From: Rebecca billardiae RCC1528
Taxonomy: Eukaryota; Protista; Haptophyta
Direction of reading: 5' to 3'
Assembly: GCA_965240325.2 (NCBI GenBank)
Contig: OZ251227.1
Location: 3,348,001-3,412,000, forward strand
Length of the DNA stretch: 64,000 nucleotides
A model generated the notes under the pieces. That model did not search any database, was not told the DNA's origin, and saw only the letters and a program-made list of their open reading frames with translations. Of this stretch, positions 6,332 through 63,906 are shown one piece after another. The first letter of the stretch is position 1; each line of letters begins with the position of its first letter. Both the position numbers and the translations under genes were made by a program.

Positions 6332-6362
6332 ATTATAATTATATATATATATATACATATAT

Positions 6363-6649
<287 letters not shown>

Positions 6650-6723
6650 AATGCTGCGCTCAGGCGCCGGCCCGGCTCGTCACGTCGTCGACGTCATCAT
6701 CAGCTAGGACGCTGTCGCTCAGA

Positions 6724-7905
6724 TCAGCGGCCCGACAAGCCGGCGCGGCCGTGCGGCGCGTCCAGGTCGAACCCATCGGCGGCGGGCACGACCGCGTACG
6801 GGTTGAGCCCCGGGTGCGACGAGAAGTAGTGCACCTTCACGTGCCGCAGGTTGAACGAGCGGCGCACGGCCTCGTGCGACTGGTACACGTCGCGCGTGTA
6901 ATCGGCGAGGTGGATAAAGTGGGTAAGCGGCCGGCGGTTCGCCTTGAAGTGGGTCATGTACACACTCTCGAATCGAGCCAGGGTGTGGAAGAGGCGCAGG
7001 TCGACCCAGCACAGCGCGTCGCCGCCGAGGAAGCGCCGCGCGCCGAGCATCCCGTCGAGCCGCTCCAGCCCGCGCTGCAGAGCGCCCTCCGCCTCCTCGT
7101 AAGCGGTTTGGGTCCGGGCGAAGCCGCACTTGTACACGCCATTGAGTACGTCGGAGTACACCCACTCGTGCAGCTCGGCGAGCTCGGCGTCGCGCTCGGG
7201 CGGGAAGAGGCGCGGCGCGGCCGGCGCGCCGAGCCCGCCGAACGCGCCGTCGAGCATCCGCAGGATCTCCTCGGACTCGTTGTTCACCGCCTCGCCCGTC
7301 GCGGTGTCGACGAGCAGCGGCGTGGTGAACTTGGCGGCGCCGCGCGCGCCGTCGCCGCCGTACTTGTCGTACGCGTCGCGCACGGAGGCGCAGCCGCCGA
7401 CGGTGTCGGGCACGAGCGCCTCGTCGCACTCGAACGCGCCGTGCCCCGCCGGGCTCGCCAGCGCCGCGTCGCCCGGCGCGCGGTACACCCAGCCGACGTG
7501 CGCGTCGCTCGGATCGTCCGGCCGCGTGCGCTGCCACGTCGGGTGCGCGAGTGAGTAGGAGATGGCGTGCTCGAGGCCCTTGAGGTAGAGCGCGCTGAGC
7601 ACGCCGTTCGCCCACGGGCACGCGAGCGCGAGGTGCAGGTGGTAACGCCCCGCCTCGGGCGGGTGGCGGCCGCCCGGCGACACGAGCTCACGGAATGCGC
7701 CTGGCGTGCGTTTGAACTCGCCCTTGGCGCCCACCTCGTCGAGCGCGGTGCGCGCGCCGCCGCCGGCGGCGAGCGCGGCGAGGCGGGCGGCGGCGGGCGC
7801 GCGCACGGGCGCGCGCGTCAGCGCCGCCGTCCGCCACGCGCCGCGCGCGAGCCGCGCGGAAGGCATCGTCAGCAGCAGCGTCGTCAAGACGTGCGCCGCC
7901 GCCAT
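6724..7905 (-). CDS. Glutathionyl-hydroquinone reductase (Xi-class GST, YqjG/ECM4-like)
   Basis: [14 protein letters not shown] active site, [55 protein letters not shown]; N-terminal targeting-like extension. Confidence 0.92.
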
Positions 7906-8014
7906 TGATCGCCGATTCGCGCGCGCCGCGAAAGAAAGGTCCGGGCCGGGAGCGCTCTCCCCACTGCCAAGGGGGTCTCTCCCAACCTAAACGGCTAAAC
8001 CGCATGGCGAGCGC

Positions 8015-8941
8015 ATGCCATCGCCTGGGACACGACGATGGATCCCGTTTTGGGCGTCCACCGCGCTCACTCTAGCGCTGGCCCCGCACCATGACTCGCG
8101 CGGCCGACGTGATGCCCAGCTACTTTTCATCCACGTGGGGAAGGCAGGCGGGGGCACGGTGAGAAGCTTCATGCGCGACCACGGTGTCGCGTACCTCGAG
8201 TCCCACACCCATCGCACATCTCTGAGCGACATTCGTTCAGCTGCTGACGGAAAAGTGGTGGTGGTGTTGAGAGACGCGGTGGCTCTATTCATAAGCGCAT
8301 TCTATTGGTTGCGCAACCCCCGTGAACTGCGCACAGACCCTGCAAACACGCAGGTGACAGCCTGTTTTGATGACGTGGAGCCGTTCACACGTGCGCTCCT
8401 CAACTTGGGTTCTGATGATGCACATGGCCAGCCGAATGCGTCCTGCATCGCCCAAGCGCAGGACTTCGTGGCAAACCCTCAACTGGCGCACATCAGCAGG
8501 CGCATCGCGTACTACTTTGACAGCAGCGCCGTCCGCGCGCTCTCACGCATGGATGTGTTCGTTGTGTGCGCCGAGCGGATGGAGCGCGACCTGGCAGACA
8601 TGGTCCGCTGGCTGAACGGCTCGAAGTCCGGGGCGCGGATGCAGCGGGTGGGCCGCGCGTGGGCGCTACCTTCGGTGAACCGCGCCCAGTACAACCACAC
8701 GCGCGCGACCTCGCTGCTTGAAGAGCGCACGGCGGCTGCGCTTGCCTCCAGCAGCCTGCTTGCCGCTGACTACCACGCGGCGGCCATCGTGCTCTGCATG
8801 AGCTCCAACTACGGTCCCAGAGTCTCCGTGATGCCCGCGGAGCTGGGCCGACTCAAGGTGGTCAACTGCTCGGGATCGCCGCCCCGTGCTTCATACCTGA
8901 TCGACGACCAAGTACCACCACCCGCCGAACTGCATGAATGA
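8015..8941 (+). CDS. Sulfotransferase-like protein with N-terminal signal/anchor
   Basis: LFIHVGKAGGGTV (5'-PSB-like loop), VVLRDAVALFISAFYW (3'-PB-like), terminal ADY motif. Confidence 0.7.
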   Translation: MPSPGTRRWIPFWASTALTLALAPHHDSRGRRDAQLLFIHVGKAGGGTVRSFMRDHGVAYLESHTHRTSLSDIRSAADGKVVVVLRDAVALFISAFYWLRNPRELRTDPANTQVTACFDDVEPFTRALLNLGSDDAHGQPNASCIAQAQDFVANPQLAHISRRIAYYFDSSAVRALSRMDVFVVCAERMERDLADMVRWLNGSKSGARMQRVGRAWALPSVNRAQYNHTRATSLLEERTAAALASSSLLAADYHAAAIVLCMSSNYGPRVSVMPAELGRLKVVNCSGSPPRASYLIDDQVPPPAELHE

Positions 8942-9249: not shown

Positions 9250-10374
9250 ATGAGCGAGTGCGTGCCCGCCACCGGCGAGTGCGCGGTCACCGCCCCTCGC
9301 GCGCGCGCGCTCACCACCGCCGACCCCGCGCGCACGCGCCGTCGCGACCGCCATGCGCCGAGCAGGCGTGGAGGCGGCAAGCGCAAGCGGGCGGCGAGCA
9401 CGACCGACGAGCCGGGTGCGCGCGGCGGCGCGCGCGGCGACTGTGCGCGCGCACGGCCTGCCTCACTCCCGCGCCCGGCCCTCCCCCGCCGCGCGCGCGC
9501 GCAGGCGCGGACGCGGACGACGCCGTTTCCGAGACACTTCCCGGCGTCGCGTACTCATGTGGGTACTGCGCGGTGGGGCTGGGCGGCGAGACGTTCATCG
9601 AGAGCGTGCCCGCGGCGTCGGTCGGCGCGGGCGGCGAGGCCGCGCCCGTCGGCACCGGCGTGCCGCTCTGCCTCGACTGCTTCGCCGCAGGCGTCGAGCT
9701 GCCCGGCCGCGCGCGCTCAGACCCGTACCGCGTTGTGCACGGCGTGTCGCGGCCGATGTTGGCGACGGGCTGGGGCGCGGACGAGGAGCTCGCGCTGGTC
9801 AACGCGATCGAGCGGATGGGGTGCGCGCGGCGCGCGCGCGCTCGCGCCGCCCACGCGCCCGCCGCCTGCCCGCCGCGCGCTGCCGCCGCGGGCTGCGGCT
9901 GCGGCTGCGGTTGCGGCTGCGGCTGCGGCTGCGGCTGCGGCTGCGCCTGCGCCTGCCCGCCTGCCGACCCGCCCGGCTGCTGCTGGCGCGCGCCGCGCCC
10001 GCCGCCCCCTCGCCCTGCACGCAGCTTCGGCAACTGGGCGGAGGTCGCCGAGGCGCTGCGCTCGCGCTCACCCAAGAGCGCCGCTGAGGCGGAATGCCAC
10101 TACACGGTGCACTACCTGACAGCGGCCGAGGCGCCGCTGCCGGCGGTGCGGGAGTCGCCGCTGAGCCCGGCGGAGGAGGACGCGGAGCGCGCGGTGTGGA
10201 TGGAGACGACGGGCGCGCCGCTCGAGGCCTCCGTGCGCGCGCGGCGCGACGCCGCCTTCGCACGCCACGTGGACGCCGTCGGCGAGGCGGCGCTGGCCTA
10301 TGGTGCCCTGTCTCTCTCCGCGCACGGCCGCGCGGACGACGGTGGTGACGCGGCCGGCGGCGGCGGCACCGGCC

Positions 10375-10414
<40 letters not shown>

Positions 10415-11501
10415 GCGCGCCTCCGGCCGGGGCGGCGCCGCCGGCCCCTCCGCCGCCGAGCTCGCCGGTTACATGCCGTTACGCGGCGAGTTCGACATCG
10501 AGTGGGACAATGACGCGGAATTGCTTCTTGCCGATCTCTCCTTTGGGCCGGGCCGAGACGGGGCGGAGGAGGCGGAGGAGGAGCGCGCGCTCAAGATGCG
10601 CGTGTGCTCGCTGTACAACGCCAAGCTGGACGAGCGCGCGCGGCGGAAGGGCTTCATCGTCCGCCGCGGCCTCCTCGACTTCCGCCGGCAGCAGGCGGCC
10701 GACCGCCGGCGCTCGCGCGAGGAACGTGAGCTGCACGCGGCGCTCCGGCCGTTCGCCAGGTACCACTCGGCGGAGGAGCACTCGGCGTTTGTGCGCGGGC
10801 TGCTGGCGGAGGTGCGGCTGCGCCGCCGGATCGCGCAGCTGCAGCACTACCGCCAGATGGGGCTGAGCACGCTCGCGCAGGCCGAGCTGTACGACCGCGA
10901 GAAGCGCACGCGCGACCTGAACACGCGCGCTCACGAGTTTCCAAACCCGACGCGCGCCGCCGCCAAGGGCGCCAAGGCGGCGGCGGCGGGCGGCGGCGGC
11001 GGCGGGCCGGGCGGCGGCGGCGGCGGCGGCGGCGCGGGCGGCGCGCCCGCCGCGCCCGCCGCCGGCGGCGGCGCGGGCGGCGCGGGCGGCGGCGGCGCGG
11101 GTGGCGGCGCGAGCGCGGGCGCGGCCGCCGACGGCGCCGCCGGTCCGGGCGGCGCCGTCGGCCTCTGCCTCTCGACGCACGAGGAGCAGCTGTGCTCGGT
11201 GCTCGGGCTGACGAGTGCGCAGTACGCGTACGTCAAGCGCGTGCTGCTGCACGAGTGCCACCGCGCGGGCTTCCTCCGGCGCGACGAGGCGCGCACGCTC
11301 GTGCGCATCGACGCCCGCAAGGCCGGACACGTCTTCGACTTCTGCGTGCACGCCGGCTGGCTCCCCGAGGGGCCTCCCGCCGGCTCGGCCGCCGCGCCCG
11401 CGGCCGAGCCCGTCGGAGCCGCCGCGCCGCCGCCGCTCACCGCGGAATACGCGCTCCCGGCCGCGGCCGAGCTCGGCGGCGCCGAGCGGCCGGCCGAGTG
11501 A
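9250..11501 (+). CDS. ADA2: Transcriptional adaptor ADA2 (ZZ-SANT-SWIRM); predicted introns 9416-9504 and 9821-10024, possibly also 9258-9365
   Basis: WGADEELAL...MG|FGNWAEVAE...ECHY SANT, GYMPLRGEFDIEWDNDAE, YNAKLDERARRK, C-terminal SWIRM (EEQLCSVLGL...IDARKAGHVFDF..AGW); splice phases checked. Confidence 0.92.
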
Positions 11502-11510
11502 GGGTAGTGA

Positions 11511-11531
11511 GGGTTAGGGTTAGGGTTAGGG
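11511..11531 (+). repeat. (TTAGGG)3 telomere-type repeat just after the ADA2 stop
   Basis: GGGTTAGGGTTAGGGTTAGGG preceded by degenerate GTGAGGGTAGTGA. Confidence 0.9.
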
Positions 11532-12272
11532 CGAGTGAGAGGGGCGGCGGCGGGAGCCGGCGAGCCGCCCTGCGAGGGCAGGCCTCCAGGGCAGGCCCTC
11601 GCGCGCGATGGGCGCACGCCAAGCTCCGCCGCGCCAAAGCCCCAGGCCCGCAGGCGGATCACCAGGGGCGCATCAGCGTCATCATCATCCCATCCACATT
11701 CTGAATTCATCACGAGGTCCTGGCAATGATGATTCCGAGGTTTTCCGAACTCGCGTCGGCGGCAGCTCCGCCTGCCGCCCTCCCGCCGAGCGATCCTTCT
11801 CCTCCGTCCCACTAGCCAGCGTGCTTGCAGCCGCAGCTGTCGACCCGCCGCCCTCGCACGGCCCGGCCCGCCTCGCCCTCGGGGAGCCGCTGCCCGGTCC
11901 GGAGGCGGAGTCCGGTCGGCCGTCGGCCGCCGCTGCCGCCGAGAGGCGAGAGGCTGCGAATGAGTGAGCCGCCCGCACCGCGGCACCGCCCACCGGCACC
12001 GGGCTGCCGCCGCCGCTGGCCGCGCATGTGGGCATGTGGCGGGCAGCAGCATGGCGCCATCACGCCCTGGGCTATGGCCGGCCCGCTGCTGCCGGATGGG
12101 CCGCACCCGCCCGCCCGCAGGCAGCGCCGCGTACACGCCGCCGTGGCATACATGTACCGCCATCCCGCATCCAGGTCCGCCGGGCTGCGGCGGGCGGCCC
12201 CGGGCGTGCGGCATCACTACTGCTGATAATAAATAATAATAAATGATGACAGTAGCAGATGACGACGATATA

Positions 12273-12925
12273 TGTGATGGGGTTGTTGGCACGACAATAA
12301 TAACTGACGACGATTGTCTAAGAGGCCCGCGGTGCCGCGGCGCGGACAGCAGCAAATGCAGCAATGCGCCCGGTACTGCTCTATCTTAAAGAATCATCTC
12401 GACCAACGCACGACCTGCCTGCCATTATATTATTTATATTTTATTTTATTTATTAATAATAATTATTAATATATATATCATATATCCTATTATATATATA
12501 TATGTATATATATATTCGCCTCATCATTCGGCCTGAGCCAGGCGGCGCCGAGCTCAATGGTCCTGCTGCCATCTCGGCCCGACCCTCACTTCGATCATCG
12601 TGATCGTGCGCCACGAGGGCCTTAACCTTTCGAGTTTCGAGCCTACTGCTCTGTGCTCTTGTGCGCACGCACGACGGCCTATAGAACGACTTACTCGCTG
12701 CGCTGCTCAGTGCTCCTGGGCCTTAGGCTAATAAGTATAATAATAGGCGAGGTTGGCATGGCGGTCAGGACGGCCAATTGGTGAACGGGGTTTTTCATCA
12801 GGCGCCGAGCCAACCGACTGCTACCGAGTACCGACGCTGCAGTGCAGTGCCTCTCGGGCTCTCGGTCACTCTGAGACTGAGACTCTCGCCTCACTCGCAG
12901 CGCAGAGTCACGCCCCGTTCAGGTC
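12273..12925 (-). mobile_element. Degenerate, internally deleted and insertion-expanded copy of the family A element
   Basis: 12273-12722 aligns collinearly to the reverse complement of 39809-40031, and 12744-~12925 to the reverse complement of ~38810-38936; right boundary approximate. Confidence 0.88.
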
Positions 12926-13100
12926 CATATCTAGTATCTACTGAATAGAGAGAGAGAGATTCAGAGAGAGAGACTAGAGACGACGATATTAATAATTTAT
13001 TATACTCAATAATAATAATCTATATTATATAGTTAGGCGCGCGTGCCCGGTCATCACTGAGAGTCATCATCGCAGCATCAGCTTATTATTATATTTATAC

Positions 13101-13192
13101 TAACGACGTGGTATGCAACGGGCAGGCGTCAGAGTCAGCAAGCTGTAGCAGCAGATCGAGCAGCAGAGACAAACACCAGGATCAGCGCTCCT
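13101..13192 (+). repeat. Dispersed repeat, family D, copy 2
   Basis: 91/92 identical to 6363-6454. Confidence 0.9.
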
Positions 13193-13317
13193 CGCCGTCG
13201 TCCCCCCCCCCCCCTCGTAGTCGCCCATCACTCCATCGCCGAGCGGAAGCTCGACGCACCGAGTCTGGCGTCGACGCGCACGGCGCCACCGCGGTGGTCG
13301 CGGTGCGCCATAGCATA

Positions 13318-13404
13318 TGGCATTATTCTTCCGAATCCGACTCCCGCGTTCGCGTCTTCCGAATCCGACTAATTATACGAGTCGGATTCGGAAGAATAAT
13401 GCCA
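13318..13404. repeat. 87-bp inverted repeat (26-bp perfect arms), MITE-like
   Basis: TGGCATTATTCTTCCGAATCCGACTC at 13318-13343 and its reverse complement at 13379-13404; partial third copy at 13355-13370. Confidence 0.85.
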
Positions 13405-13571
13405 GCAGCAGTCAGCACTCGCATCCGGTGACGTGACTCACCGTGACTGTCTCACCTGCGTCCGATTCGGCTGGCTCGGTCGCGCGGGCGGCCTGGGGGG
13501 GGGGGGGGGGCGGCCACCGTGCAGGCCTGCAGCACAGGCGCACAGTCTGACCGGCAGGCGGCAGCGCCACT

Positions 13572-16500
13572 CTACGGCTGGCGGGACGACTGCTGCAGCT
13601 GCTGGTCACCAAGCGGCACCAGCTGGCGCGGCGGCAGCTGCTGCTGAGCCTGCTGCGCGGCCCCCTTCAGCGGAGCAGCGCCGTCGTGCTGCGCTGCGGC
13701 CGGAGAGGGCACCAGGCTCATGAGGTCGGCGAGCCCAAGGCCCGGCGACGCGCGCCACTCGCACGCCGCCGTCGCGAGGCCGAGGCCTGGGCTGCCGGGC
13801 GGCGGCCGGCCCTCGGCCGCGCACGCGGCGGCGGGCGACGCGGCGGCTGGCACCGTGGTCGCGCCGGGCGGTGGAGCGGCGCTCGTCGGCGCGGCGACGG
13901 CGGCGGCCGGCGCGGCGGCAGCCCGGGCCCAAGGCCCACCGCCTGGCGTTTCCACGGGCTCGGCCGCAGCCTCCGCGCCCGCGCCGTGCGGGCCGTGCGG
14001 CGGGGCCGGCTGCGCCGCGCCCGCGGGCGCGTACTCGGCCGCGGCCGCCGCCTCCGGCTGCGCGCCCGCCGCCGAGATTGCAATCTCGTCCGCCGCCGAG
14101 ATTGCAATCTCGCCCGCCGCCGCCGCCGCTGACTGCTGGCGCGCCGGTGAGCGAAGCAGATCGCTCAGGCTGAAGTCGTGCCGTGCGCGCAGGCAGGCCT
14201 CGATGTGCGCCTGTGCGCGGAGGGGTAGGGTAGGGTTAGGGTTTGGGTTGGGGTTTGTGAGGAGGAGGGGAGCCAGGCAGAGCGCACAGCCGAGGCGGGC
14301 GCGGGCGGCGCGCGGTGCGAGCGAGGCCCCGCGCGAGCAGGCAGCTAACCCTAACCCTAACCCTAACCTAACCCTAACCCTAACCCGGTGCGAGCGAGGC
14401 CCCGCGCGCGCAGCCAGCCGCGCGCGCCGCGCGCGCCGCGCACACGTTCTGCTCGTCCAGCCCGAGCTGGAGCTGCGCGGCGCACACGGGGCACACCGGC
14501 GCGCGCCCGTCCGGGTGGAGCAGCGAGGCGGCGACGAGCGCGCCGCTCAGACCGCCGCCATCGCTGTGCTCGAGCAAAGCCTTGCGCTTGCGATCATGCG
14601 CGCGCGCGGAGCGCGCGGCCGCCTGGCTCGAGCGCTTGGCCGCACGCTCGGACGCCTCCGCGTCGTCCTCGGCGCGGCGCTCGGCGGGCGGCGCCGGCTC
14701 GGCCGCCACGATCCTGAACGGCCGCGCGCGCCTCGACTTGGGCTTGGGCGCGCTGCGCGCGCGCTTGCCCCTCGGCGCGCCCGCGTCCGCGCCGCCGCCG
14801 CCCTGCGCCTCGCCGAGCTGCCCCTGCCCCTGCTGCTGTTGCCTGGCCAACGCTTCGAACGGCTTGTCCGAGCCGTAGTTGTAGAAGATCTCGTCGCCCT
14901 GCGCCCGGCGCGCACGCACGCGCCGTCCGCATCAGGGCCCCGCGCGCGGCTGCCGCTGCCACTGCCGCTGCCGCGTGCGCGTGCGCGTGCGCGTGCGCGT
15001 GCGCGTGCGCGTGCGCGTGCGCGTGCGCGTGCGCGTGCGCGTGCGCGTGCGCGTGCGCGTGCGCGTGCGCGTGCGCGTGCGCGTGCGCGTGCGCGTGCGC
15101 GTGCGCGCGCGGGGCCGCGCGCGCCGCGTGCGCCGCGCGCGCGGGGCCACACCTCGTTGATGCGCTGCGTGGCGGTGAGGTAGGCGCGCATGGGCACGAG
15201 CTGCTGGATGTCGCGGTGCGTCCCCTTCGGCGTCTTGAAGCACAGCCGCGCGTTGTACATCGGCTGGCACCGCGGGTCGTTCGCCATCGACGCGGCGCCG
15301 AGCTCCCAAGCAGCCGCGCCGGGCAGAGGGTAGTGCCGTCCGTCCGCGGCGGGATTGGCCGCGTTGGCGCGCAGCTCGAGGGCGAACTGGCGGCCGTCGA
15401 TGAGCTGGCCGCCCGAGCCCGGGATGCGCACCATGTAGCTCTGGTCCAGCCCGCGCGACGCCTCCACCTCCTCCTGCGCGCCGCGCGCCGCGTAGTGTCC
15501 GCGCGCGACAGCTCGTCGGCCGGCGCGCGCGCGCGCGCCGGCGGCCGCGGCGCCGCGTGGCGCGCGCGCGCGCGGCGCGCGCGCGGCGCACCTTGAAGAG
15601 CAGCGGCCCCGAGTAGGCGGTGATGATCTCGCCGCCCTCGAACGGCTCGCCCGCGAACAGCCCGAGCCCCGCCTGCGCCAGCCCGGACTCCCGGACGAAG
15701 ACGCGGCCGTTGGCGAGTGTGCCAAACTCGTCGGCACACGAGATGAACGGGAGGCGGCCATCCTCTTTCACCATCTGCTGCGCGCACGCGATGGGGCGCG
15801 CGGCGCGGCGGCCGAGGAGGTCGGTGGTCCCCGACGCGTCCTCGCGCCTCGCGCGCAGGCACGCGTCGCACAGCCGCGCCTCGTCGTCCGTCGGCTCGAG
15901 CTCGACCCACGCCGGCCGGGAATTGGCGCGGCACTTTGGGTGGAAGAAGTTGGAGCACTCGGCGCACTGCGCGCCGCCCGCGTTCGAGTTGACGCCCTTG
16001 CACGCGCAGGACCACGGGCGCTCCTCGGGCTTGCGCGGGCAGCGCACCGCGTGCATCAGGATGCCGCGCTCCGTCGTGAACACCTTCGCGCACCAGCGAC
16101 ACTCGTACGCGCACGCGGCCTGCGCGAGCACGTCGACGCCCGCCGCCTCGAGCTGCGCGCGCTCGCAGCCGGTGCAGAGGTACGACTCGCGCAGCTTGTC
16201 GAACTCGCGCGGGCTGAGCTGCAGCCGCTCGCACTGCACGTGGAAGAACTTCTCGCAGCAGCCGCACCACAGCTCGGGCGCGCGGCGCGAGCACACGCCG
16301 TGGCAACGGCAGCCATACGCCTTGCCCTCGCGCGAGTTGCGCGCCGCGAACTTCTGCTCCTCGCGCGAGGCCCACATGCGGTTGGCCGCGGTGTCGCGCG
16401 TGCCCTTGCCCAGAAAGTCGCGCAGGATCTCGAGCTGCCGCGTCTGCGAGCGCCGCCGCTTGGCGCGCGCGGGCGACGGCTCGGGCGGCGCCGCCGCCGC

Positions 16501-22256: not shown

Positions 22257-22795
22257 TCTATATAGCTGCTAGTGCTGGTAACGTTATTCGCGCGCGCCGA
22301 CCGAGGCTTGGGGGTTATACGGAATTAGCTACTAGACGGCCGTTACGACCACTGATGTAGTATAGACCGTTTTCCGGGCTGCGCTGCCTAGCAGTACCGA
22401 GTGGCGATGCCAGAGTAGTCTAGCAGTACAGCTATATGTGGGGTTATTGGTACAATAACTGATTGTCTAAGAGGATGACGACAAGAACGCCGGGTGCCAG
22501 CGCCGCTCATCAGCCACATCGCCCTCTACCAGACCATCGCCTCAAAGGGCGCTGCTCCCGGACAAACAGTCTGTCCGGGTTGTTCTGCCGCCCACCAGGA
22601 GACTCTAGGGGGTCCATGACAGCAGCCCACTGAATTGTGATTTTCGACAACCATGCGATTTAGGTGTCTGACGAGCGTGGCGCTTGCGGAGGCACCCACA
22701 AATATGTCCTGGAACCCAGCCCAGCCGTCAGAAGCACCCAAAACCGACTCCGCGCGTCGTCGCGCGGTCGTGCGCGCACGCCAGCTGCGCCACTG

Positions 22796-23116
22796 TGTCA
22801 CATACAGATTCAGCCAAACGTCAACGACTTGTTATGGCGGCTAAATGACGGTATGTCGTCGGACTTACTTATTCATAACCGTTGCAACCCGCCCCAACAA
22901 AATTAAGGTGGACTTGCTAAATTTTAGTAGGCACGATGAGTGCGCGTAGAGGTCGGTGAAAAACTACTCCAAGATCGAGCATGTTACCCACTTAATTAGA
23001 GACATGTACCCGTATATATGCACTCACCCACCCGTTTATTATACAATGCGGGTGGGTTTTAAATATATATTCAGGGTGGTGTCAATATGGGGGTACCTTG
23101 TTCACTATTCGTGACA
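22796..23116. mobile_element. Low-GC nested insertion with TGTCAC..GTGACA ends
   Basis: Abrupt drop in GC, 6-bp inverted ends, CTG on both flanks. Confidence 0.45.
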
Positions 23117-23432
23117 CTGGGTCATCCGAATAGGCCGCGCCGCCGCGCGGAGTGACGGCGGGCTCATGCCACCGTCAAACCGTCCCGCAGCAGGCCCGGA
23201 CGGACCTGATGCGGGCGGCGGGCTGCAAGCCGAAGCACACTACCAAGCGCACCTCTGAGCATGCCACCATCCCCATAGTCGTGAAGGAGTCCTCCGCCAT
23301 CGACGCTTGCGTGCGCAGACTAGCAGTCATCGCCGCCGCAGAGCTTGCCGCGGCCGTTCGGCGACTTCCGTGCCCGTGCTCTGTGTCACCGGCGTCGTCG
23401 CCGTTCGTCGTACCCCAGCCCACGCGAGGCCG

Positions 23433-24752
23433 TCACCGGTCCACCGGTACTGCGGCGGACTGCGCGCGCTTCGCCGCGCGCTCGCCCTCGAGCTCCGCCG
23501 CTCTCCTCTCGCGCTTGAACTGGACGCAGTCGGCAGCCATGGCAGCCCGCTCGGCCGCAGCGCGATCTGTGCCCCCCCGCGCGCTGCGCTCGGTTGCGTC
23601 GGCGCGCAAGCTGGCGCGCGCAGCGTCGGCGACGGCGCGCGCGGTCGCCTTGCGCGACGAGTCCAGCTCCACCTGCTGCTCCGTCAGGCGCACCTGCTGC
23701 TCCAAGATGACCGCGTGCTCAGCAGGAGTCACGCGCTGCTCGTGCAGCGGCACCTGCACGCGGCCTGCTGCGGACGCGCGCGGCGCGCCGGCGTCGGGGG
23801 GCGAGTAGAGGTCGCGGAAGGGGCAGCTGTCGTCGCCGGCGCCCAGCGACGTGTCGTCGGCATCCAGCTCCGCCTTCCTCTCCGCCGCCGACGCGCCCTG
23901 CTTCCGGCTCAGGATGCGCTCCATGTCCTTGTTCTTGCCCTTCCACCACCTGTGCACGGTCATCAGCCAGATGCCGATCACCTCCAGCAGCGGCGAGTCG
24001 TGGCGCGCCGAGATGCCGAGCGCATCCGCGCAGACGAGCGCGAGCGCATTGGGCTTCTTCGTCCCACCGTCGCGCGCGGTCTGGGCGCACGCCGGGGTGA
24101 ACACTCTGACCAACGGCTTGTGCTTCTTCAAGTTCTCGAGCATGAGGTCCACGAGCGTGCGGAGGAGGTCGAGGAGCATGAAGTTGAGCACCGATGCGTA
24201 CCGCGGGCGAAAGCCGGCCACGGGCCGACCGGCCAAGGGCTGCAGCACGTGGATGGCGCGCGCCGCCACCGCCGTCTCCTCGAGCTGCTGCGCGCTGACG
24301 TTGACGTCAGGCCGTAGCTCGGGCCTGCACGGTTGCACACAGCCGAGGCCGTCCGCGGAGGAGGCGAGCCCCTCGGCGGTGCCAGCGGGGACCTCGGGCG
24401 GGTCGCACACATCCATGGGCACGCGTGCATCATCATCTGCCGCGCCCTGGACCTCGTCATGCCCGGCACAGCGGTCCGCAAGTTGGTCGGCGGTAGCTGG
24501 CCCTTGCGGCAGAGACGTCGCGGGCACGTCCGAGGGCGAGAAGGCAGCGTCGGGTGGGGAAGGAGACAGCGTCGAGTCGTTGCCGATGCCTATCCCACCG
24601 CGTTGCGCATGTTCGTCTCCGCGTTGCTCGCCTGCACGTGCTCCTAGGACGCGCTCCTTGGTCGCGGGCAGCACACGTTGAGCACGCAGATTCAAATCAT
24701 GAAGCACGAGCGTCGACTGGCCAGCGACTCCCAGCGAGAGCCCGGTCCACAC
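23433..24752 (-). CDS. Hypothetical element-borne protein with C-terminal coiled coil (start uncertain, possibly pseudogenised)
   Basis: 439-codon ORF with a protein-like central region (NFMLLDLLRTLVDLMLENLKKHKP..EVIGIWLMTVHRWWKGK); the frame continues past the TGA to 23175. Confidence 0.45.
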   Translation of the reverse strand: MWTGLSLGVAGQSTLVLHDLNLRAQRVLPATKERVLGARAGEQRGDEHAQRGGIGIGNDSTLSPSPPDAAFSPSDVPATSLPQGPATADQLADRCAGHDEVQGAADDDARVPMDVCDPPEVPAGTAEGLASSADGLGCVQPCRPELRPDVNVSAQQLEETAVAARAIHVLQPLAGRPVAGFRPRYASVLNFMLLDLLRTLVDLMLENLKKHKPLVRVFTPACAQTARDGGTKKPNALALVCADALGISARHDSPLLEVIGIWLMTVHRWWKGKNKDMERILSRKQGASAAERKAELDADDTSLGAGDDSCPFRDLYSPPDAGAPRASAAGRVQVPLHEQRVTPAEHAVILEQQVRLTEQQVELDSSRKATARAVADAARASLRADATERSARGGTDRAAAERAAMAADCVQFKRERRAAELEGERAAKRAQSAAVPVDR

Positions 24753-25312
24753 GAAGCATGGCTACCTGTCCGCAGCCGCCCAGCCGCTCGGCGAGGCGCC
24801 TGCGCCGAGGTGGGCGCGCCCAACGGCGAGCGGACGGCCGTCGACGAGGGCCATCAGCCTCGCCGACCCCGTTCAGAGCTCCGCTCCCGCGCCGGGGCCA
24901 GCCGAGCGCGGATTTGGAATCTGCCGATCGCGAAAACACGCCGAACAAGTTCTGAAAAGGAAAAGAAAAGAAATCAAAAAGCAATTTAATCTGATGGACC
25001 CCCTACAGGAGATCGGTTTCCGGCGCCGGCCTCTGCCGCCTGCTTCGCCAGGCGCGGCGTGCGAGATGGCTCCAGCCAAGCTCGTCCTGCGTCGCCGGCG
25101 GCGGCGGCTCGCACGCGGGTGGCGCGTCGCGTGCACCGACCAACATCTTTCGGCAAGGACACGTAAATCCCACTGAGTAGGAACACACGCAGCCGCCTCG
25201 GCATCGACATGCCAGGCGGCGTGCCCACCTTCATCGGCCAGCAGTTGGCGTCGGCGTTCACGAGGACGGCTAGACATATATATATATATATATAGTCCGC
25301 CGCCGTGAAATA

Positions 25313-26934
25313 TGACCGCGTTCCGCGGTCCTTTTCCGTAGAACGAACGTAGTTCAGGGCCCGCGGTGGCGGCCGGTGCACCCTCCGTCGCAGTCGTCTA
25401 TTGACAGACCAGTTGCATATATGCGGATAGTGCCCGTACAACTAGACTCCAGCGGCGCGCCGCCGCCCGCCGCGCCGGGCGGGCCCATTGCAGCCGCCGG
25501 CGCGGCGCCGATTGTGTACAGGCGGATGCGACGAGGCGTGATCGACGCATGAGCGCGACTCCCCGTGCACACCAGGCCACGCGAAGCTGACAGCCAGGGA
25601 GCACGGTGCGGGGCCGCGGATTCGTTCGGGCCGCTGCTGCTGACCGCTGAGTCCCCGGGGTCACCCCCCGCGCCGGCAGCGCCCGGGATGATGCACTGGT
25701 CCGAGTAGGGTTCGACCAGCGCCTGCGCGACGGCCGACAGGCGGGCGCGAGGCGTGATCGACGCATGAGCGCAACTCTACGTGCACGCCAGGCCACGCGG
25801 AGCTGACAGCCCGAGGGAGCACGGTGCCGAGGTGCGAGGGCACCGGTGATCCGGTTCGCGCACTCGCCGCGCGTGCACGGGCAGCTGACACACCTCGATC
25901 AGGCTCGGCACGCGTTGCAGAGGCACGGCCAGCTCTGGGGACGTCACGCACCACCGTCGCCCGCGCAGCTCGTCCTCCTCGTAGAGTACCGTTCAGTTCC
26001 GAGGCGTAGCCCTCGCTCAGAGTCGACCGACGATGGACTCGGATCGTCGCCGCGCCTGCTCTCTCTCAATCAAGAAGAGTTCTGGGAGACCCCGGAAAGG
26101 CATGGCAAGGGCGGCGCGTGGTGAAGTCGAAGGCTCAGAGATCGATCAGTCCGGCATCAGGCGCCACTGCCCCCGAGCTTGCGAGAGCCCGAACACAGGG
26201 CGGCGGCTGCGGCGCCGGCTCGCGGACGCGCCGGGGCCGCGCAAGGCCGCGCCGAGGCATCGACAGGGCGGCAGGGGCGGCGGGGGCGCGCGGAGTGAGC
26301 GGGGGCACGACGAACGCGATGTCGACGGCAGTCGGGACCCGCCGCAGCCGCGCGCTCCAGGCGCCATTCGCCGCGCGCACCTGCCCATCGCCGTCCTCAC
26401 CCGTCGGTCGCTCGTGAGCCTCGTGCCCGTGGCTCGCCTCCAAACGCGGGCCGCCTCTGGTGGGCCGCCGCCCGGGGCCGCACGCGCGCCCAACCAAGTC
26501 CGTTCGCGTCAGATAGTATATTGAGATATACGCCGAGCTTGGGCCCTCTGCTACTGACCCTTGCCTTGTCGGCTCCTGATACAGATAGGGCGCGATTGAA
26601 TAGTTGATCAACTGATTCAAGGGACGTACATTGTCACATCGGTTCGCGGCAATCTCACTATCAAACTAAATCGCTCGTAACGAACCGTTACGTTAAAGTC
26701 ACGGCCGCTCACGTCCCGTCCATCGATTGAATAGGGGAATGTCGTGGACGCGGTTATTTCTCCGTAATGCATGTGTAGAGAGGGTCTCAAAAATCAAAAC
26801 TCGGTCACCGCCAGCCCTAAAAATATTAACATCGCCCCCCGTCCCTTTTTTCTTGATCAAAGATCTTTTTAAAACGTGGTTAGGGCCCACGGAGCGGGCT
26901 CCACGCTGCGCGTTCCGCCCTGCACCGCGGGCCA
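25313..26934 (-). mobile_element. Family C non-autonomous element
   Basis: Left end shared with 63804 onward; terminal hairpin GACCGCG-TTC-CGCGGTC; GGCCCGCGGTG (25358-25368) inverted at 26923-26933; internal ~80-bp direct repeats near 25532 and 25748. Confidence 0.62.
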
Positions 26935-32608: not shown

Positions 32609-32712
32609 GGTGGCGGCGCGCGGCAGGGCGCGGGCGTGGGCGGGACGACGAGGACAGCCAGTCAAAGGAGTGGCGGCGGGATTCCAAGTTGGAGCGCGGT
32701 GCACGGGTGTGC

Positions 32713-33840
32713 CAAGGGCGGTAAGGGCTGTCAACTCCCAGTGGCGGCAGCGCCAGAGGTTGGTTCCCGCTTCGCTGCTGCGCGGCCTCGCTCCAGCGAC
32801 TAACTCTCGTGGGCGCCCGCCCCGGGGGGCGAGTGGGGCGCGCACGGCGCGAGCTCCTGCGGCCGTGTACGCGCGCGCGGAGGCGGCGCGCGCGGCTGGG
32901 CAGGTGCTAGGGAGTGCATGTCGCCCTCCCACGCCGCGCGCCTTGCTCGCCGCCGCTTTCGCCGCGCCTCAGGCCAGCGCGCACGCGTGCGCCGCCTCCA
33001 GAGCCAGCCTCGGGCCCGCGGCAGCTGGCCGCGCGCGTGTGGTGCGCGGTCTGGTCGGCGCGAGTCGGTCGGGGCCATCGGGCGAGGTTCGCATACTTTA
33101 GACGCGCGCTCTGCCGCCGCGCGCCGCCGCGCATGGGCCCGGTACCATCCCGTGAAGCTGTTGAAGGAAGCTGATCGATGAATGCACGACAAGCAGAAAT
33201 GAGCTCGAACACGCGACAGTGAGCGCCCATGCGCGTGATAGGCGGCCGCATTGGGCGCGTGTACGGCGTCCTATGAGTGCATTGCCCCGCTCTTCATCGC
33301 CTGCGCGCGTCTATTGTGCTCTCCAGCGTCTCCATGAGCGTCCAAACATGAGCATTTTCGCATTCGTGCTGCAGTTCGTGTCAGACCTAAGATGCTTGCG
33401 TGTCGACCCATGACAACCGTGCGCGGCGGCGCGCGGCGGCAGAGCGCGCGTCTAAAGTATGCGAACCTCGCCCGATGGCCCCGACCGACTCGCGCCGACC
33501 AGACCGCGCACCACACGCGCGCGGCCAGCTGCCGCGGGCCCGAGGCTGGCTCTGGAGGCGGCGCACGCGTGCGCGCTGGCCTGAGGCGCGGCGAAAGCGG
33601 CGGCGAGCAAGGCGCGCGGCGTGGGAGGGCGACATGCACTCCCTAGCACCTGCCCAGCCGCGCGCGCCGCCTCCGCGCGCGCGTACACGGCCGCAGGAGC
33701 TCGCGCCGTGCGCGCCCCACTCGCCCCCCAGGGCGGGCGCCCACGAGAGTTAGTCGCTGGAGCGAGGCCGCGCAGCAGCGAAGCGGGAGCCAACCTCTGG
33801 CGCTGCCGCCACTGGGAGTTGACAGCCCTTACCGCCCTTG
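32713..33840. mobile_element. Foldback element with 421-bp inverted arms and 7-bp TSD (P- or hAT-like termini)
   Basis: 32713-33133 is the reverse complement of 33420-33840 with 2 mismatches seen; termini CAAGGGCGG; GGTGTGC duplicated at 32706-32712 and 33841-33847. Confidence 0.92.
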
Positions 33841-33957
33841 GGTGTGCGCAGCAGGACTTTGCACCGTGACACCGTACAAGTACTACTGAACCGTCGCGTC
33901 CGTTGGTCATGAAAAGCACCTCCCCGCCTGCGCAGTCCTTTGTGCACGCGCGCGGCG

Positions 33958-38592: not shown

Positions 38593-40031
38593 TGTCTAGC
38601 CGTCCTCGAAGCGCCTGCGCCATCCAGATGCAGTGAGGAGGCGAGGCACACGCCGGGCAGGGCGGAGCCACGCTGCGAGAGACCAGACTTTATACATATT
38701 GTATGGGATAGCTTGGACGACGCAGCTCGAGAGCCGCCAAGCCGCACGACAGCGAGGCACGAAGGACATCGTGCATAGGGCGCCTCGAAGCTGCGGGCCG
38801 CCGGAAACGGCTGCGAAGGGCGCTCGCTGCGAGTGAGCAGGAGGCATGCAGCAGCGACGGTAACGGTTGGCTCGGCGCCTGATGGAAAACCCAGTTCACG
38901 AATTGGCCGCCCTGACCGCCATGCCAACCTTGCCTAGTGAGCTTGACCCGTTGCACGCGTGAGCGCCGAAAAAACGACACTTTGGCAGTGATAGTCATCA
39001 GCACCGTCGCCGCATCGTGGGCATGCCGCTGCCGCCGCCGGCGGCGGCAGCGGGAGCGTGGCAGCAGATCTACCACCTTCCGCGTTACGCGCTGCGTCGT
39101 GCGCGCCAGGTGGCAGGTTTCCCAGGTCCGCCGCGCGGAAGGCAGCGTGAGCGGTCGGCGAGCGCACGGAGATGAGAAGTAAGCGCGCATCGTGAGAGCT
39201 TCAGCAGCTTGCCCACGCGCTTCACGAAGGCGGTGTGGTTGCGTGCGCACGCCTTCTGTACCCGTACCCGCGATCAAAGCGTGAGCCACTCCCTAGGTCT
39301 TGCCTGCGCATCGCGGGCCGCGCCTCGTCTCCTGAATCCTCGTTCACGAGGACAGCACGTGTATCCGTGTACGCGCTCGCGGCCGATGGCGGCTCCCCGC
39401 GTCGAGAGCCGTTTGGCTGGAGCCGCATCCAAGGGCATGTATCCTCACGGCCCCACCCGATGCTGACGCTGAGGTGGCGTGCTTGCCGAAGGTAGCCGCA
39501 TTGGCTGATCTCTCTGCCTTTGGGCAACCCTTTGCAACCGCGCCGGCTCACGCTGCCAGCGCGCGCGCGGCGTGGCTTCGTGGTGGACACCTGCCCTGGG
39601 TTTTGTCGTTCGTTCTCAGCGACGGTTGGGTCGATTGACATGCGGATTGGATTGGTGCATTGCGAATCGGCTTCGCAATGCACCATTGCGCTCGGATCGG
39701 CGCGGACGTCAGCCATGCGGCAGCGCGAGCGACAAAACCGCGAGATTTCATACGCTTGTCGTTTTTTCATACGCTCACGGTTACTCACCCGTGCAACGGG
39801 TCGCTTATGGCCCAGGAGCAGCGCAGAGAGTAGGTCGTTCTAGGCCGTCGTGCGTGCACACAGAGCACGGGCTCGAAAGTCCCTCGTGGCACGAGAAGAG
39901 GGTGGCCAAGATGGCAGCCGGACTTGAGCTCGGCCGCCTGGCTCAGGCTGAATGGCAGGCAGGTGTTGATACGGCGCATTGCGCTCCCACCGTCCTCTTA
40001 GACAATCAGTTATTGTGCCAATAACCCCACA
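38593..40031 (+). mobile_element. Family A element, copy A2 (1439 bp, non-autonomous)
   Basis: (TA)n|TGTCTAGCCGTCCTCG ... CCGTCCTCTTAGACAATCAGTTATTGTGCCAATAACCCCACA|(TA)4. Confidence 0.85.
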
Positions 40032-40039
40032 TATATATA

Positions 40040-42794
<2,755 letters not shown>

Positions 42795-43067
42795 CGACTG
42801 ATGAAATAACATTAATTATTGGTAACTGCTGCAGTCTGCTGCTGTCGGCTATCGTGCGTCCGGTCTGCAATGACAACCAGGTTCGCGCGCTCTGTGCGAC
42901 TCAGCACTGCTCGAGTCAATCAATCTCCTCAGCAGCACATGCAACGACGACGATCGACATGCAGTCGTGTCAGCAGCTACAACGCGGACTCAACGGTGCC
43001 GGTGCCCGGTCCGGCGTGGACCCGTTCGCCCCTGGCCAGCACACTCACTCGATCACACTACGCCCGA

Positions 43068-63712: not shown

Positions 63713-63743
<31 letters not shown>

Positions 63744-63803
63744 ATAATCGCGATATATGCTGACGCTGATTAATTATCATACACATACACACACATATAT
63801 ATA

Positions 63804-63906
63804 TGACCGCGTTCCGCGGTCCTTTTCTGCATAGAATCAACGCAGTTGGGGGCCCGCGGTGGCCGTGCAATCGCGGCTCTCCGCCGTAGTGGCAGTTCGC
63901 CAGTTG
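63804..63906 (-). mobile_element. Family C element hairpin end (second copy, probably continuing beyond the window)
   Basis: TA|TGACCGCGTTCCGCGGTCCTTTTC identical to 25313 onward; GGCCCGCGGTGG conserved; follows TA/CA microsatellite. Confidence 0.75.

Follow-up and report, generated by a model that had tools for sequence, protein, structure and literature searches.

Does a transposon copy that has grown by many small insertions point to a dedicated mutagenic system or to the ordinary evolution of spacer DNA? This question is raised by copy A, which lies in a spacer between genes in the window, that is, the whole 64,000-nt stretch of contig OZ251227.1 of the haptophyte Rebecca billardiae RCC1528 that was analysed. 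The initial annotation had described copy A as doubled in length by micro-duplications and had proposed a localised, insertion-biased process acting on repeats, an 'indel analogue of RIP'. Here, copy A is compared with two related copies (B and C), with other repeat pairs of the window and with non-repeated spacers. The features are listed in Table 1.

Table 1. Copy A, its parts and flanks, and the related elements of the window
Feature	Position	Strand	Description
Copy A	12273-12912	+	Old copy, truncated at its 3' end, of a non-coding element with TG...CA termini; 640 nt; aligns to the first 345 nt of copy B without its nested element (B')
AT-rich filler in copy A	12426-12523	+	98 nt, 9% GC; (TA)n, (TTATT)n and (TAA)n-like runs
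AT-rich insertion, 11 nt	12730-12740	+	At the site where copy B has its nested element
Indel-free 73-nt stretch of copy A	12744-12816	+	93% identical to 38936-38864; CCAAT-like motif
Left flank of copy A	12215-12272	.	Simple-sequence spacer: TAA/ATAA runs, GATGACGACGAT motif
Right flank of copy A	12913-13089	.	Homology to copy B ends; (GA)n, GACGACGAT, AT-rich runs
Copy B	38593-40031	-	Complete element, both ends present; lies at A^T within a (TA)n tract
Nested element in copy B	38945-39802	-	858 nt; imperfect TIRs of ~35-46 nt; absent from copy A
Copy C	22437-25275	+	2.8-kb element in a TA tract; sole outgroup for polarity

Genomic setting and base accuracy

The host genome is compact, gene-dense and ~70% GC. 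The window is itself ~70% GC, and its low-GC islands are short and intergenic. Eukaryotic proteins encoded in the window include a GST and an Ada2-like protein that carries a SWIRM domain. For the GST, 100% identity was found with just two sequences, the 1.4-kb Logan contigs of runs ERR14847148 and ERR14847151 (RNA-like), its next-closest matches being from MMETSP (62%) and from the haptophyte Diacronema lutheri and an unclassified pelagophyte (54-56%).

Many gene-to-gene spacers contain a (TA)n tract (6453-6650, 42678-42800, 25275-25296 and 63713-63740, among others). Long hexanucleotide arrays are found at 9864-9970, (GCTGCG)n, in what is probably an intron of the Ada2-like gene, and at 14972-15118, (GCGTGC)n. 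Long homopolymer runs of C and G are located in the spacer 3' of copy A (13203-13216 and 13496-13511). The spacer of copy A also holds a near-perfect hairpin with ~24-nt stems (13317-13405), which looks like a small foldback element; its matches to miRNA models were weak and sub-threshold, and an Rfam scan of 11500-13800 returned sub-threshold matches only.

Both Logan contigs align to 6621-8050 of the window without gaps and at 100% identity over 1430 nt, part of a TA tract included. The assembly is therefore accurate to the base over the part open to such a check. The two contigs stop at 6621/6626, within the tract at 6453-6650. Long-read consensus errors are mainly homopolymer indels, and the 5-9-nt duplications and the 98-nt AT tract of copy A are unlike them. 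Given, in addition, the agreement with the RNA contigs and the similar texture of all spacers, an assembly or consensus artefact at 12273-12925 is very improbable.

The transposon family and its nested element

Copies B and C, both of which sit inside (TA)n tracts, are inserted there at A^T, and each has a 7-bp hairpin located 6 nt from one of its ends (at 40009-40025 in copy B). They have in common only a 43-nt 5' end and a 3' end of ~20-30 nt. Helitrons insert at A^T without a target duplication, have a hairpin near one end and TC...CTRR termini, and encode Rep/helicase in autonomous copies. As candidates for a Helitron-like family, copies B and C show insertion at A^T and a near-end hairpin; their termini are TG...CA instead of TC...CTRR, and no Rep/helicase gene was found in the window. 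The 439-aa ORF of copy C had no match in Pfam or the Atlas, the 150-aa ORF over the 5' region of copy B had none in the protein collection, and exact look-ups of three ORFs in or beside copy A gave no match. The terminal 35-mer of the family had 0 matches among metagenome contigs.

The TIRs of the element nested in copy B are located at 38945-38979 and 39757-39802, and its 4-bp target duplication, AAGC, at 38941-38944 and 39803-39806. Copy B measures 1439 nt as it stands and 577 nt without the nested element (B'). Aligned with B', copy A reads through the empty site, from which it differs by 2 substitutions and the 11-nt AT-rich insertion. The initial annotation had seen here a ~870-bp deletion junction with AT filler. 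An internally deleted copy A with junction filler (12723-12749) was rejected, the missing 858 nt being the nested element of copy B. Since copy A aligns through once this element is removed, the alignment indicates that it predates the nested insertion or comes from a lineage without it. What distinguishes the two TIRs of this element is a 10-nt insertion, a near-copy of the adjoining bases (GGTGAG...CGTGAG) and thus a small duplicative insertion in another element.

Copy A differs from copy B mainly by insertions

The collinearity reported initially between 12273-12722 of copy A (450 nt) and the reverse complement of 39809-40031 (223 nt) was confirmed, with a global alignment score >20 sd above 200 shuffles and above that of every other 450-nt segment of the window. 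Under five gap-cost schemes, this block contains 14-26 A-only gaps (227 nt), 0 B-only gaps and 7-27 mismatches. The whole of copy A, aligned with the first 345 nt of B', shows 311-329 matches, 15-34 mismatches (4.4-9.9%), 22-35 A-only insertions (295 nt) and 0-1 B-only, all within one copy pair. The differences are thus mostly insertions in A, as had been stated, and the asymmetry holds across gap costs (binomial P about 1e-7 to 1e-10). Collinearity continues beyond 12816 to about 12912 with further A-only insertions, and no counterpart of the last ~230 nt of B' is recognisable in copy A. A doubling in length therefore describes the homologous segments and not the copies overall, which measure 640 nt in A and 1439 nt in B (577 nt without the nested element). 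The small extra segments of copy A have a GC content of 53%, compared with 61% for the matched bases. What had been described as an AT-rich filler of ~100 bp proved to be the 98-nt tract in Table 1, which is bordered by an imperfect direct repeat of ~11 nt (GCCTGCCATT / GCCTCATCATT).

Under the same scoring, the A/B' alignment contains 22 substitutions and 29 indels, and seven other repeat pairs of the window together contain 23 and 9, so that indels per substitution in A/B are ~3-fold higher than in the other pairs (Fisher P = 0.013), whose own ratio (9:23) is fairly high. A 103-nt repeat located 180 nt downstream of copy A, at 13090-13192, differs from its counterpart at 6352-6454 by 4 substitutions and 0 indels. 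Two inverted arms of 425 nt, 280 nt apart (32712-33136 and 33417-33841; 99% identical), differ by 3 substitutions and 0 indels. The arms are a young foldback-type structure in GC-rich DNA. The ~100-nt unit (96% identical, gap-free) lies between two TA tracts at 6352 and after an AT-rich run at 13090; it could represent a very small mobile element or an isolated terminus. Two further pairs beside TA tracts (25310-25370 and 63801-63863; 25518-25609 and 25737-25827), 87-89% identical, have small indels in both directions. The indel-free stretch within copy A has a P of about 0.01-0.07 under uniform indel placement.

Given the outlier rate of copy A and its indel-free neighbours, either the process acts patchily or some of A's insertions were acquired in a burst. 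In a burst, most insertions would have arisen together, through a single round or a few rounds of slipping DNA synthesis of low processivity, either when the copy was made or during templated break repair (interrupted gap repair or template switching), rather than by gradual decay. The excess of indels per substitution over the other repeat pairs, the indel-free state of both the neighbouring 103-nt repeat and the 73-nt block, the single direction of the changes and the 3' truncation of copy A are all consistent with such an event. However, several of the duplicated units are already one base apart, which suggests that they differ in age. Two further points that weigh against a burst come from the spacers, which are described below.

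Polarity of the changes

Within the first 43 nt, which cover 3-4 events, the state of copy C is that of copy B, and all of these events are derived in A. In the state of B and C, the terminus folds into a perfect 7-bp hairpin, which is disrupted by A's insertions. The case for polarity had been made initially from two copies that lack the insertions; the copy at 22437 does polarise this stretch, and nothing beyond it. Farther on, we infer the polarity from parsimony and from the micro-duplication level of copies B and C and of the homologous part of B, which is close to the shuffled baseline, unlike that of A.

The reverse history would have an A-like long state, perhaps that of a subfamily, as the ancestor, with about 30 short segments lost from the B lineage through deletion between short direct repeats as the element was streamlined. 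In a two-copy comparison, the loss of a tandem unit looks like a gain, and the outgroup covers only 43 nt. Yet every polarisable event is a derived change in A that breaks the terminal hairpin. Moreover, an A-like ancestor would have been a 'stuttering' transposon, whereas the micro-duplication level of copies B and C is close to that of shuffles, and a 98-nt tract of 9% GC is improbable within an active element. We therefore regard this reversal as quite improbable and treat the differences as gains in copy A.

About half of the insertions copy adjacent bases

All the micro-duplications quoted in the initial annotation are present in copy A. They comprise GAC, TAA and CGACGA insertions (12293-12311), ATCGTG twice at 12597, TTTCGAG twice at 12628, TA at 12680 and TGCTCAG at 12704. 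The more general statement that the insertions mostly copy adjacent bases holds for only about half of them. A strict tandem test, in which the period equals the gap length, showed no excess (62 vs 66 expected). Since aligner gaps merge several neighbouring events, this test is limited, and it was replaced by local-match and tolerant-period tests. With the tolerant test, a tandem copy was found in 15 of the 33 small insertions, compared with 7.2 +/- 2.1 for random inserts (500 trials, maximum 14). The summed longest direct match between inserts and their flanking +/-20 nt was 65 (49 expected), and inverted (snap-back) templating was not significant (54 vs 48). Exact tandem duplications with units of 4-12 nt number 9 in copy A (1.9 in shuffles) and 3 in the homologous part of copy B (1.1 in shuffles). 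The A-specific exact units are of 5, 5, 5, 6, 6 and 7 nt, and near-copies of 7-8 nt are common. About half of A's inserted bases have no recognisable local template.

Some of these duplications resemble a target site plus one or two bases (TG-A-TG, TCGTG-A-TCGTG and TGCTC-AG-TGCTC), and the 7-nt TTTCGAG is repeated exactly. They might thus be TSDs of other DNA transposons that repeatedly inserted into this spacer and excised again. Such footprints should cluster at one or two lengths; in copy A, however, the units range continuously from 2 to 11 nt, mostly 2-9 nt, with no dominant class. Many events are microsatellite-like, and about 30 cycles of insertion and excision within 345 nt would be implausible. 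We consider this origin highly unlikely.

The texture of copy A is that of ordinary spacers

Near-duplications cover 20.8% of copy A and 16.6% of the other low-GC islands, which are non-repeated, compared with 7.2% of shuffles. Coverage is 6.9% in the homologous part of copy B (shuffles 6.3%) and about 11.6% in the whole of copies B and C (shuffles 7.4%). Copy A therefore has the texture of a spacer, and the initial description of a repeat turned into 'stuttering' intergenic DNA was apt. The enrichment of direct 5-mer repeats in the low-GC islands is 2.2-, 3.4-, 2.9- and 2.3-fold for spacings of 0, 1, 2 and 3 and has fallen to baseline by spacing 9; inverted repeats are barely enriched. Direct repeats with a period of 5-9 nt are in 2-3.4-fold excess in spacer DNA. 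In high-GC, mostly coding DNA, enrichment is confined to spacings that correspond to 3n periods, a pattern that would result from selective filtering of a general duplication process.

The duplication process thus looks general rather than repeat-targeted. Fungal RIP depends on duplicated DNA, affects every copy and produces C-to-T transitions. Like its targets, copy A is a degraded transposon copy, and its extreme insertion bias is what might be expected of a dedicated insertional mutagenesis that recognises duplicated DNA; unlike them, it carries insertions, its other copies are untouched and unique DNA is alike. If such a defence acted on duplicated DNA only, non-repeated islands would not exceed shuffles as they do (16.6% vs 7.2%), and if it mutated all long copies, copies B and C would not be near baseline nor the 425-nt arms and the 103-nt repeat free of indels. 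There is no sign of a recognition step. Given the same texture in unique spacers and the unaffected state of these repeats, the RIP analogue proposed initially is unsupported, and we give it very little credence.

The spacers also bear on a burst as the source of A's insertions. The density of duplications in copy A equals that of ordinary non-repeat spacers, and the spacer-wide excess of 5-9-nt direct repeats requires a general process anyway. We consider a burst unlikely, although it has more in its favour than the other alternatives, and retain gradual gain through a general process as the preferred reading.

The motif GACGACGAT occurs 9 times in the window (0.68 expected), mostly in spacers and often beside TA tracts, at positions including 116, 12261, 12306, 12979, 16951, 42946, 45366 and 59658. 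Three of the nine occurrences are in or beside copy A, one of them made by an insertion. The segment 12978-12994 has a 17-nt match to 109-125 on the minus strand. It is possible that GACGACGAT is a seed for a microsatellite of the (GAC)n type, or else a motif of the spacers.

Comparison with known duplicative-insertion processes

Polymerase-theta scars usually pair an insertion with a deletion, often with inverted templates. The inserts of copy A match nearby sequence above expectation, as in theta-mediated end-joining; however, with 0-1 B-only gaps there are no accompanying deletions, and inverted templating was not significant, so the combination of insertion plus deletion with direct or inverted local templates was not found in A. 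Slippage alone predicts exact copies, and gains as well as losses. The spacers, rich in scrambled short direct repeats, recall the 'cryptic simplicity' reportedly described by Tautz, Trick and Dover in 1986, and the rise of (GAC)n, (CAG)n, (TA)n and (TAA)n inside formerly complex sequence is a further likeness to slippage. Gains dominate in copy A, however, and several of its copies bear extra bases. Slipped-strand mispairing itself dates back to Levinson & Gutman 1987 (via PMC8355091, its reference 13).

Small tandem duplications are the most frequent type of short insertion in both humans and rice (PMC8355091, citing its references 1, 13 and 14). They have been shown to form when Pol alpha-primase/CST fills in breaks that have complementary 3' overhangs and NHEJ then joins the ends; theta-mediated joining serves as a back-up route (PMC8355091). 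A 'patch-mediated' break model had been put forward for natural rice insertions (Vaughn & Bennetzen 2014, via PMC8355091, its reference 14). Copy A resembles these duplications in the copying of adjacent bases and in the occasional extra bases at junctions. It differs in that its units are mostly of 2-9 nt and in that half of its inserted bases are without a visible template, and its sequence does not itself show breaks, overhangs or enzymes. The fill-in and end-joining, or templated repair, invoked in the initial annotation is thus plausible and not new, being established for small tandem duplications (PMC8355091 and its references 1 and 14).

An insertion-rich ratio had also been taken as an anomaly. 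Measurements in unicellular eukaryotes have given 0.14-8.6 indels per substitution (PMC7466956), insertions are ~6x commoner than deletions in S. pombe (PMC6330053), and indel-rich or insertion-biased spectra are reported for Dictyostelium, Plasmodium and Schizosaccharomyces pombe (PMC7466956, PMC6330053). The indels and substitutions of A/B (22-35 : 15-34) fall inside this span, and insertions likewise outnumber deletions. The published spectra, however, are direct measurements in AT-rich or model genomes, concentrated in simple repeats, whereas copy A represents a single history inferred for an alga of ~70% GC, in which the apparent bias is 30:1 or higher. We found no measurement of a haptophyte small-indel spectrum: a search for genome papers on haptophytes yielded none, and the E. 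huxleyi mutation-accumulation paper reports none (PMC7486954).

A probable history of copy A

On balance, we consider it probable, if only just, that copy A is a dead transposon copy that gained duplicative small insertions and microsatellites through the general process acting in spacers. Copy A would have inserted and then evolved unconstrained, gaining about 30 small insertions. In roughly half of these gains, the adjacent 2-9 bases would have been copied, some with one or two extra bases, and short microsatellites, (GAC)n, (CAG)n and (TAA)n, together with one AT-rich tract, would have been born and grown within the copy. The likely source is the general process behind short tandem duplications, namely replication slippage, the fill-in of staggered breaks followed by end-joining, or both. 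Here, duplication would be frequent relative to substitution, insertion-biased and active on all unconstrained DNA, and the texture of copy A would represent convergence on that of ordinary spacers. Some observations sit less easily with this history. The indel-free 103-nt repeat, at 4% divergence and in the same spacer, is hard to fit with a uniform, gradual process. The comparison concerns a single copy pair, itself ~3-fold richer in indels than the others (P = 0.013); about half of the inserted bases lack a local template, and most of the polarity rests on parsimony.

Implications

As a single locus, copy A is a clear example of known duplicative-insertion processes and no new system, and its strong insertion bias is notable. 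For annotation of this transposon family, the ancestral element is about 577 nt long, not 1439. It is conceivable, though we hold it doubtful, that a similar regime operates genome-wide. In unconstrained DNA, small insertions, most of them duplicative, would then be far commoner than small deletions and would match or surpass substitutions. Dead repeats would turn into 'stuttering' spacer within a few per cent of substitutional divergence, and only rarer large deletions would check spacer length. If true, such a regime in a compact, gene-dense genome of ~70% GC would depart to an unusual degree from the deletion bias that is widely observed. If the bias of copy A (about 30 insertions to at most 1 deletion, with ~1-2 indels per substitution) were genome-wide, it would bear on the origin of spacers and AT-rich tracts, on the speed with which transposon copies become unrecognisable, so that repeat content is underestimated, and on the general claim that small-indel spectra are deletion-biased.
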